A stretch of 64,000 nt of DNA from Octopus sinensis (lineage: Eukaryota). The notes beneath the pieces are model-generated. The model was not told the DNA's origin and did not search any database. It was given only the letters and a program-made list of their open reading frames with translations. Location of the stretch: positions 48,236,001-48,300,000 of the forward strand of contig NC_043007.1 in the NCBI RefSeq assembly GCF_006345805.1, read 5' to 3'. Position 1 is the first letter of the stretch. The number at the start of each line of letters is the position of its first letter. The position numbers and the translations under genes are program-made. Below are positions 25,424 through 27,774 of this stretch, piece after piece.

Positions 25424-26602
25424 ACTAGCAGTATCGCCCGGCGTTGCTCGGTTGTAAGGGAAATAACTATATAAGCATTTTTAGAGAGTTATAGCCAAAA
25501 AATAGCAAAAAAAATGCATTAAAAATTGAAAAAAAATTAAGGTAATTTTTTTTTAAATCGTTGGCACATCGTAGATATTTTTAGAGAGTTACTTCCCTTA
25601 TATAAAAGCGAAAAAAATGCACTAAAATGGAAAAATATGATGGTAAATTTTTTTTAAATCGTAGACTCATCGTAGACGCGCGCTAATACCCAGAAGGGCT
25701 CGATATGAATCACGACTATAAGATACCCGCTTTTGGTTAAACTGCACCGCAAAATGTGGGAGTAATTACGAATGTAAATCGAAGGGGACAGACACACAAC
25801 TTCACTCTTGTATAAAGATGCTTTTTTTTTCAGTCATAGAGTTAGATTTATGAAGGTCTTCAGTAGAAAATCCTTCGAATTCTGACTCGCTGCTTGATAT
25901 AATGAAATTCGTATCCATTTTTTGTCAGAATTACAAATTTTGAAAACACAATAGGATCAAATTTCGGAAAAAATCTCCCATAATTCACGGAATTAAAATT
26001 ACACTTCGATTTTTGTACAAAACTGTATTTGAAGTGTTTACGAAGTATAATACGTGTTTTCACGAATGTACTAAAGAGATTTACTCTGATATTCTCATTT
26101 AAATATGAATAGGTAAATTCGGGCGGTTTGGTAACGAAAGGGTTTATATAAGTGTCGTCTGTTTATACATAAACACTGTTTCATAGTTTCAGTTTAGTCT
26201 TCCTCAAATCACTGTCGCTAATTACTCTCTTCCAAGAACATTTTCACTCACTGTTATCTGTTAGCTTCCATACATTTTACTCATGTATCTATCAGCGTGA
26301 TAGACAGAAACAAATATTACATTTACTTTCATTTTATTCGTTGCCCACTGTGTGTGTGCGTTTGCGTGTGGTGTAAACCAGACTAAGAAAAGCATTTGAC
26401 ACACACACCAGAATGTGAGTTTTCTGTAAATTTTGCTTAATTGGAGTTTAAATTTTAAAAACTGGACCTGGCATGACGCGATGCATTGTACTCTTAAAAC
26501 TGCTAGGTAAATTGTAATTGAAGAAATCCTATATTGTAGATTTGTATAACTCCCAAAGGGAGGCAGCTAAAATCTGCCTTTTATAATAAGAGATAAGAGA
26601 TA
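25424..26602 (-). mobile_element. Non-autonomous Helitron, left arm of giant palindrome
   Basis: 3' end on the minus strand (actagcagtatcgcccggcgttgctcgg is the reverse complement of ccgagcaacgccgggcgatactgCTAGT); 5' TC end at the palindrome centre. Confidence 0.85.
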
Positions 26603-27774
26603 TATCTCTTATTATAAAAGGCAGATTTTAGCTGCCTCCCTTTGGGAGTTATACAAATCTACAATATAGGATTTCTTCAATTACAATTTACCTAGCAGTT
26701 TTAAGAGTACAATGCATCGCGTCATGCCAGGTCCAGTTTTTAAAATTTAAACTCCAATTAAGCAAAATTTACAGAAAACTCACATTCTGGTGTGTGTGTC
26801 AAATGCTTTTCTTAGTCTGGTTTACACCACACGCAAACGCACACACACAGTGGGCAACGAATAAAATGAAAGTAAATGTAATATTTGTTTCTGTCTATCA
26901 CGCTGATAGATACATGAGTAAAATGTATGGGAAGCTAACAGATAACAGTGAGTGAAAATGTTCTTGGAAGAGAGTAAATTAGCGACAGTGATTTGAGGAA
27001 GACTAAACTGAAACTATGAAACAGTGTTTATGTATAAACAGACGACACTTATATAAACCCTTTCGTTACCAAACCGCCCGAATTTACCTATTCATATTTA
27101 AATGAGAATATCAGAGTAAATCTCTTTAGTACATTCGTGAAAACACGTATTATACTTCGTAAACACTTCAAATACAGTTTTGTACAAAAATCGAAGTGTA
27201 ATTTTAATTCCGTGAATTATGGGAGATTTTTTTCCGAAATTTGTTCCTATTGTGTTTTCAAAATTTGTAATTCTGACAAAAAATGGATACGAATTTCATT
27301 ATATCAAGCAGCGAGTCAGAATTCGAAGGATTTTCTACTGAAGACCTTCATAAATCTAACTCTATGACTGAAAAAAAAGCATCTTTATACAAGAGTGAAG
27401 TTGTGTGTCTGTCCCCTTCGATTTACATTCGTAATTACTCCCACATTTTGCGGTGCAGTTTAACCAAAAGCGGGTATCTTATAGTCGTGATTCATATCGA
27501 GCCCTTCTGGGTATTAGCGCGCGTCTACGATGAGTCTACGATTTAAAAAAAATTTACCATCATATTTTTCCATTTTAATGCATTTTTTTCGCTTTTATAT
27601 AAGGGAAGTAACTCTCTAAAAATATTACGATGTGTCAACGATTTAAAAAAAATTACCTTAATTTTTTTTCAATTTTTAATGCATTTTTTTTGCTATTTTT
27701 TGGCTATAACTCTCTAAAAATGCTTATATAGTTATTTCCCTTACAACCGAGCAACGCCGGGCGATACTGCTAGT
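26603..27774 (+). mobile_element. Non-autonomous Helitron, right arm of giant palindrome
   Basis: 5' a-tctcttattataaaagg at 26604; second 5'-like end atctttatacaagagtgaagttgtgtgtctgtc at ~27381; 3' ccg-agcaacgc-cgg hairpin region and CTAG (27770-27773) then T. Confidence 0.85.

Follow-up and report, generated by a model that had tools for sequence, protein, structure and literature searches.

A near-perfect 2.35-kb palindrome with Helitron-like ends within a TA microsatellite of Octopus sinensis

Background

How does a near-perfect palindrome of 2.35 kb come to lie inside a simple repeat, with sequences at its axis and at both of its outer ends that resemble the termini of a rolling-circle transposon? 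This question is raised by positions 25425-27773 of a stretch of 64,000 nucleotides from Octopus sinensis (contig NC_043007.1, 48,236,001 to 48,300,000 of the forward strand; hereafter the window, from whose first letter all positions are counted), in which an earlier, sequence-only reading had proposed two Helitrons placed head to head. Canonical Helitrons start with 5'-TC, end with CTRR-3', insert between an A and a T and carry, 10-15 nt before their 3' end, a hairpin-forming palindrome of 16-20 nt. They favour AT dinucleotides within AT-rich DNA as insertion sites, and their mobilisation proceeds from the 5' towards the 3' end, on one strand. In Octopus vulgaris, recently active Helitrons have been reported, with 8 families and 178 young insertions.

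Structure of the palindrome

The palindrome spans 2,349 bp (25425-27773) and consists of two arms of ~1.17 kb, with the flanking bases 25424 (A) and 27774 (T) falling outside the palindrome proper. When the left arm is globally aligned with the reverse complement of its right counterpart, 9 differences are found over ~1172 positions (99.2% identity), which agrees with the "eight or nine" counted previously. Three are substitutions (25564, 25622 and 25957) and six are one-base indels (25546, 25574, 25822, 25967, 26221 and 26267), five of which lie in homopolymer runs, 25574 being the exception. Counted apart from these nine is the sole asymmetry at the axis, where the left side has seven extra nucleotides, AGAGATA (26596-26602), corresponding to the 7-bp duplication that the sequence-only reading had placed left of the axis. 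The initial 7 nt of the left arm, TCTCTTA, are present as a tandem duplicate, and the extra AGAGATA is part of a period-7 stretch (26586-26602; two units plus 3 nt) and forms the loop of the predicted hairpin.

When the central 301 nt are folded as single-stranded DNA, one perfect hairpin with a 7-nt loop is obtained (-174.9 kcal/mol, z = -39.7), a fold that none of 100 shuffles matched and that is beyond chance. Alignment and fold together thus bear out the near-perfect 2.35-kb palindrome that had been described at this position. The innermost 328 bp of the arms are 100% complementary, and all nine differences fall 329-1050 bp from the axis, a distribution with a probability of ~0.05 if the differences were spread uniformly. 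This is a weak hint of homogenisation around the centre, and it does not discriminate between the duplication of one insertion and two separate integrations, the two routes that are weighed below.

Both arms, the left one (25425-26600) on the minus and the right one (26605-27773) on the plus strand, are non-coding and, judging from the arm alignment and the terminal motifs, Helitron-like. Each arm has a 5'-TC directly after a host A (26605-26606 on the plus strand and 26600-26599 on the minus strand, a boundary drawn from a single locus) and a 3'-terminal CTAG followed by a host T (27770-27773 before 27774 on the plus strand, and 25428-25425 before 25424 on the minus strand). The right arm starts with 5'-TCTCTTATTATAAAAGG and finishes with CGCCGGGCGATACTGCTAG-3', its outer end reading ...AACGCCGGGCGATACTGCTAG. 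The 3' terminus (27755-27773 on the plus strand, mirrored at 25425-25443) is composed of a 9-nt GC palindrome (CGCCGGGCG), ATACTG and CTAG; the GC palindrome ends 10 nt before the CTAG terminus and is embedded in sequence of 32% GC.

The space between the two 5'-TC ends is occupied by TATA (26601-26604), which forms the centre of the palindrome and is read as a leftover of a host (TA)n tract. To the left of the palindrome lies an (ATAC/ACAT)n microsatellite that finishes in (AT)7 (25250-25424), and to its right (TA)35 is followed by (AG)19 (27774-27879). Upon deletion of 25425-26600 and 26605-27773, the flanks and the central TATA join into an unbroken, in-phase (TA)n within a compound (ACAT)n(TA)n(AG)n microsatellite, of a type that is also present elsewhere in the window. 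Since the removal of the arms leaves an uninterrupted (TA)n, the pair lies within a single TA tract and has host sequence at its centre. The description of the arms as meeting "essentially without a spacer" conceals this remnant, as the TC ends do not abut but are separated by TATA. At the outer ends the flanks (A...T) rejoin to AT without a duplication, although the TA repeat could conceal a target duplication. The AT-rich target is of the kind that Helitrons favour.

Complementarity continues for ~14 nt beyond CTAG, through the (AT)7 and (TA)35 flanks. The arms had been said to "stop exactly" at CTAG followed by T; such ends are indeed present on both sides, but the exact stop is not independent evidence, because it follows from the self-complementary TA flanks.

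Anatomy of a single arm

Close to the 5' end of the arm (~15-48 nt from it), two small hairpins lie next to each other at 26620-26652 on the plus strand (GGCAG-N7-CTGCC and CTCCC-N3-GGGAG; mirrored at 26553-26585). Such a 5'-proximal pair is unusual, as the hairpin of a Helitron is normally 3'-terminal. A ~100-bp unit is present twice in tandem in the 3' part of the arm, at 27526-27725 on the plus strand (mirrored at 25477-25674), the copies being ~80% identical to each other, and between these units and the 5'-proximal hairpins lie ~900 bp of non-coding sequence. A Pfam search of the arm in every frame gave no credible match and no captured gene fragment, the longest open reading frame (ORF) of the arm had no homologue in a protein database homology search, and for the ORFs of the arm in general neither exact look-ups nor homology search of protein databases returned a match. 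Rfam and tRNA scans of the window gave nothing.

The 8-mer ACTGCTAG/CTAGCAGT occurs four times in the 64 kb, each time within the palindrome (25425, 26499, 26692 and 27766). Two of the copies are the outer termini, and the other two are located ~90 nt from the axis, each in the opposite orientation to the terminus of its own arm, for which the chance is about 1-2% per arm. No significant inverted repeat joining the two ends of a single arm was found.

Helitron-like character of the arms

The end signals of each arm are those of a canonical Helitron, and their arrangement can be set against rough expectations. At 33% G+C, a random palindrome is estimated to have (TA)k plus TC at its axis in ~3% of cases, and CTRR beside the flanking TA tract in ~1.4%, which jointly gives ~4e-4. 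At the other (TA)n tract borders of the window, CTRR followed by T was observed in 0 of 35 cases. Taken together with the placement of the GC mini-palindrome, the AT-rich target and the helicase relic described below, this makes it slightly more probable that the arms are Helitron-like elements than that they are not. The Helitron identity claimed by the sequence-only reading is in this way supported by the end signals of both arms, but not by a second copy, as none was found in the 64-kb window.

Searches with blastn (word sizes 11 and 7), nhmmer and a 3-mismatch motif pattern returned the two arms and GT-microsatellite noise only, i.e. no further arm copy, whole or partial, in the remaining 62 kb; nor was a paralogous empty site for the flanks present in the window. 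Exact patterns (the 3' end and a 5'-proximal 25-mer) gave zero matches in viral sequences, metagenome contigs and prokaryote genomes, as is to be expected, because these collections contain no animal genomes.

A different type of Helitron trace may be present elsewhere in the window. At 53840-56020 on the plus strand lies a decayed PIF1-type helicase frame, interrupted by stops and frameshifts, with Pfam matches to PIF1 (E = 6e-14 and 7e-13) and Pif1_2B (E = 2.5e-10). Its relatives are multi-copy "PIF1-like" animal proteins, the best of which, from Octopus bimaculoides, is 63% identical over half of the query. The relic is probably a remnant of a Helitron RepHel protein, of which the Rep part is missing, as are both element ends, and it makes the presence of Helitrons in this genome probable. 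There is no DNA similarity between this relic and the arms, and a RepHel partner sharing the termini of the arms was not found in the window.

Origin of the palindrome

Two routes lead to the observed product: inverted duplication after one insertion, or two integrations 4 bp apart. Both outer ends of the pair are 3' termini, whereas the 5' ends, at which mobilisation would be initiated, face each other, and the pair is for that reason immobile as a single Helitron. The immobility of such a 5'-to-5' dimer in turn implies that the pair arose at this locus. Likewise, with a TATA remnant between the two 5' ends, an origin in place within (TA)n is the natural reading.

The explanation that is tentatively preferred here is that of a single Helitron-like insertion in (TA)n, which would have been copied in inverted orientation, in place, via template switching in the TA tracts. 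Each arm would then represent an element that is young and non-autonomous and has the ends of a canonical Helitron (HLE1), and the compound (ACAT)n(TA)n(AG)n microsatellite would have received the original insertion between the A and the T of its TA tract. While the DNA was being replicated or a break repaired, a growing strand may have left the element via its 5' end and entered the TA repeat, where a template switch on the self-complementary TATA microhomology would have caused the element to be copied again, now inverted, after which a return switch would have taken place within the TA repeat on the other side. The 7-nt duplication of AGAGATA at the turn-around could be a slip that dates from the first switch. 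In principle, the arms would individually retain their own 5' and 3' ends, while the pair as DNA would be prone to form a cruciform and, if transcribed through, would yield a double-stranded RNA of 1.17 kb.

That a hairpin or template switch was involved had already been proposed by the sequence-only reading, which attributed it to the 5' end during rolling-circle transposition. A template switch is plausible, but nothing links it to rolling-circle transposition, and the same product is obtained from a template switch in ordinary replication or repair, or indeed from two integrations. In the latter case, two members of the same young Helitron-like family would have inserted in opposite orientation into a single (TA)n, at AT dinucleotides separated by 4 bp, either independently or in a coupled manner, whereby the second copy lands on the complementary strand beside the resident 5' end, which would be bound by transposase and melted. 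This possibility, which is regarded as somewhat less probable than duplication in place, accounts well for the host A at the 5' side and the host T at the 3' side of each arm, and the perfect in-phase (TA)n with TATA in between, which remains when the arms are removed, is exactly what two insertions between A and T predict. It also fits the targeting of AT dinucleotides in AT-rich DNA by Helitrons, and adjacent head-to-head Helitrons have been reported in maize, though these are dissimilar.

What favours duplication in place over two integrations is, first of all, the templated duplication of AGAGATA, which sits exactly at the turn-around, and which would be an unrelated coincidence if two elements had integrated. 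Second, the remainder of the window (62 kb) has no further copy of the arm, and a dozen or so additional (TA)n arrays carry no insertion. With the arm occurring at a single locus in the window and these arrays unoccupied, independent hits 4 bp apart are unlikely at a moderate copy number; by a rough estimate, well under 1 close 5'-to-5' pair per genome would be expected from independent integrations, a number that rises only with ~1e4 family copies or more. Coupled integration or homing, for its part, is undocumented. Third, TA tracts bound another local duplication in the window (39.5-41.9 kb).

A number of observations nevertheless weigh against a Helitron-like insertion that was duplicated in place. 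The product of two integrations would be identical, and the model of two switches fits any 1.2-kb segment between TA tracts equally well, Helitron or otherwise. Helitron calls based on TC and CTRR motifs are known to include many false positives, and, as no second copy of the arm was found in the window or the collections searched, its membership of the Helitrons rests on end motifs at one locus. Moreover, the 3' palindrome is 9 nt long (4 bp plus 1 nt) versus the usual 16-20 nt, and the 56-nt 3'-terminal sequence folds no better than expected by chance (-4 kcal/mol, z = -0.07, with 87 of 200 shuffles equally good). The outer limit of the palindrome is left undefined by the sequence, because the TA repeat is its own reverse complement. 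Finally, one-base indels account for six of the nine differences between the arms, a pattern that resembles residual errors of long-read assembly.

In a variation on the preferred explanation, a non-mobile segment of 1.17 kb between (TA)n tracts would have undergone inverted duplication by the same two switches and have Helitron-like ends by chance. No relatives of the arm were detected, and it is without a counterpart elsewhere in the window; its 3' terminus lacks a fold that stands out from shuffled sequence, and (TA)n tracts occur every few kb and flank the direct duplication at 39.5-41.9 kb, all of which would be in line with such a segment. What makes it improbable, more so than any of the other origins considered, is the low joint estimate for the TC and CTRR arrangement (~4e-4), as well as the presence of a GC mini-palindrome, in otherwise 32%-GC sequence, at the very position expected for a Helitron.

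Yet another origin would be one in which the whole 2.35 kb is one cut-and-paste transposon with long terminal inverted repeats (TIRs), i.e. a foldback element comparable to Tc4, FB or Galileo, that inserted with duplication of TA or another TA-repeat target and has the TC at its axis by coincidence. Inverted arms of 1.17 kb that are 99.2% complementary, a loop of 7 nt and tandem subrepeats in the outer parts of the arms are all compatible with this, and the flanks would fit a duplication of TA, of TATA or of an 8-bp TA repeat (any even-length TA duplication is possible). TIR elements that insert at AT exist as well (ATon, see below), and Tc1/mariner relics abound in the window. However, the usual terminal motifs of cut-and-paste elements include TA followed by CAGT or CCAG for Tc1/mariner and YARNG for hAT, and the terminus CTAGCAGTATCG is unlike those of Tc1/mariner, hAT, piggyBac, PIF and CACTA. 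In addition, an axis that is nearly without a loop and carries (TA)2 plus TC is not predicted for a foldback element (the chance of the arrangement being ~3%), and no second unit turned up, either in the window or among the viral, metagenome and prokaryote sequences searched. A foldback transposon is thus an unlikely source of the structure, and falls behind both duplication in place and two integrations.

An assembly artefact has to be considered in view of the arm differences. A fold-back chimeric long read (of the missed-adapter or template-complement kind) could in theory have supplied a reverse-complement copy of one real element and have been joined to the right flank within the TA repeat, and the predominance of one-base indels, five of the six in homopolymers, is what residual long-read error typically looks like; besides, the region is extremely rich in simple repeats, where misjoins are easy and a join would be hidden by (TA)n. 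Such an artefact would, however, have required two separate errors, since the palindrome is internal to the window and has different unique flanks on each side. It would also leave the three substitutions and the non-homopolymer indel at 25574 to be explained, and its axis would have been expected at an arbitrary fragment end rather than at a TA tract beside a TC terminus. Overall, an artefact appears rather improbable, being rated a little below a foldback transposon and a little above a duplicated non-mobile segment.

Comparison with known systems

Among described elements, the closest likeness to a single arm of the preferred one-insertion model is found in the non-autonomous HLE1 elements of the Helibat/Helraiser type, with which the arm shares TC and CTAG ends, a position between a host A and T, an AT-rich target, the lack of TIRs in one copy and of a target duplication, a non-coding character and a length of ~1.2 kb. 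The palindrome of Helraiser lies 11 nt upstream of its 3' end, compared to 10 nt for the end of CGCCGGGCG in the arm. The differences are that the 3' palindrome of the arm has 9 nt instead of 16-20 nt and that the copies are arranged 5'-to-5'. The left end of Helraiser reportedly reads TC...TATAATAAAAG, which would be near the TCTCTTATTATAAAAG of the arm. Helitron2/Helentron elements (HLE2) are defined by TIRs of 12-18 nt, a stem-loop at the 3' end and a target site between two Ts; they were rejected, as no 12-18 nt TIRs occur in a single arm, whose flanking bases are A and T.

Helitrons have been found joined head to tail and in tandem arrays, and arrays and circles are taken as traces of rolling-circle transposition. 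As in these arrays, the copies lie directly side by side, but the known arrays are head-to-tail, whereas at this locus two copies of 99% identity are turned towards each other, 4 bp apart, and make up a true palindrome. The head-to-head pair of maize differs in that it consists of dissimilar elements. No description of a near-perfect 5'-to-5' Helitron palindrome was found in the open-access literature searched.

Like FB of Drosophila, Tc4 of C. elegans and Galileo, the palindrome consists nearly entirely of long inverted arms that contain tandem subrepeats and enclose a very small loop. Members of foldback families move as a unit, have termini specific to their family and generate defined target-site duplications. 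The palindrome differs from them in its termini, which resemble Helitron 3' ends, and in its axis, which is a host-like TATA flanked by TC. ATon from Aedes aegypti, a short non-autonomous element, combines TIRs with specific insertion at AT dinucleotides, and can be mistaken for TA-duplicating miniature inverted-repeat transposable elements. With its 112-144 bp, 15-17 bp TIRs and terminal ATAGGCC, it has no resemblance to the palindrome in sequence or size.

Of the classical cut-and-paste superfamilies, a TA-duplicating Tc1/mariner element was rejected, as TA is followed by CTAGCAGT, with CAGT located 4 nt inside, and as the mariner copies of the window have a TIR (TCAGGTCATCCCATAAG) that is unrelated to the termini of the palindrome. 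For hAT and piggyBac, rejection is based on their generally known terminal motifs.

Finally, the palindrome has near-identical arms, a minimal spacer, self-complementary microhomology at its junctions and a small templated insertion in common with the inverted duplications that give rise to hairpin RNAs and with palindromes that originate from template switches or from fold-back at short inverted repeats. Most of the inverted-duplication loci described, however, have a spacer and are derived from genes, rather than from a Helitron in a microsatellite.

Significance

Most likely, the palindrome is an unusual arrangement of an ordinary kind of element, and it is of modest interest unless such dimers recur throughout the genome. 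If the arms do belong to a real Helitron family, the locus would illustrate how, in simple steps, a rolling-circle transposon can become a perfect palindrome of kilobase size, namely by insertion in a self-complementary microsatellite and subsequent local inversion-duplication. Palindromes of this size may cause chromosome breakage via cruciform extrusion and, if transcribed, would produce long double-stranded RNA that could enter small-RNA silencing or be subject to adenosine deamination. Cephalopod transcripts are unusually heavily edited.

It is conceivable, but improbable, that Helitrons in (TA)n microsatellites are systematically prone to become perfect head-to-head palindromes. With the same low probability, such proneness would stem either from template switching promoted by the flanks or from a transposase that places a second copy opposite the resident 5' end. 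If true, this would constitute a recurrent and so far undescribed source of long hairpin RNA, endogenous small interfering RNA, RNA-editing substrates and fragile sites. If the palindrome were an artefact or a one-off duplication, it would have no broader significance. The locus also calls for caution in annotation, as the pair looks like a single element whose inverted repeats are giant, and TIR-based tools would misclassify it.

Sequence context in the window

The window has ~37% G+C and contains debris of mariner elements and non-long-terminal-repeat (non-LTR) retrotransposons. Its simple-repeat density is exceptional, with 66 rows of tandem repeats in 64 kb, including about a dozen separate (TA)n arrays, of which the one at 49066-49342 measures 277 bp. 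Arrays of (GT)n, (AG)n, (ATAC)n and (AAT)n are likewise numerous, and fusion into compound tracts is frequent. The local duplication mentioned above is a direct tandem one of 1.2 kb (39,536-40,700 versus 40,803-41,943; 97.2% identical), with a (TA)n tract at the start of each unit and a third (TA)n at 42044.

On the right, ~105 bp from the palindrome and directly after (AG)19, lies a relic of the mariner family on the minus strand (27880-29120; Transposase_1, E = 1.7e-13), the left inverted end of which is apparently truncated at the microsatellite. A mariner-type element of ~1.17 kb is found at 56310-57478 on the plus strand. Its inverted ends (TCAGGTCATCCCATAAG) measure 17 nt and are each bordered by TA; it was inserted at a (TGC)n/(TTA)n junction and its transposase frame is broken. 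A related mariner copy starts at 29258 and is ~83% identical to it over 29388-30214. Two non-LTR reverse-transcriptase frames (RVT_1, zf-RVT) are located on the minus strand, at 57729-59423 and 60210-62540, the former of which terminates in a (TAA)n tail (57479-57548). Even the closest database sequences are only ~61% identical to these frames, and they are scattered over animal phyla.

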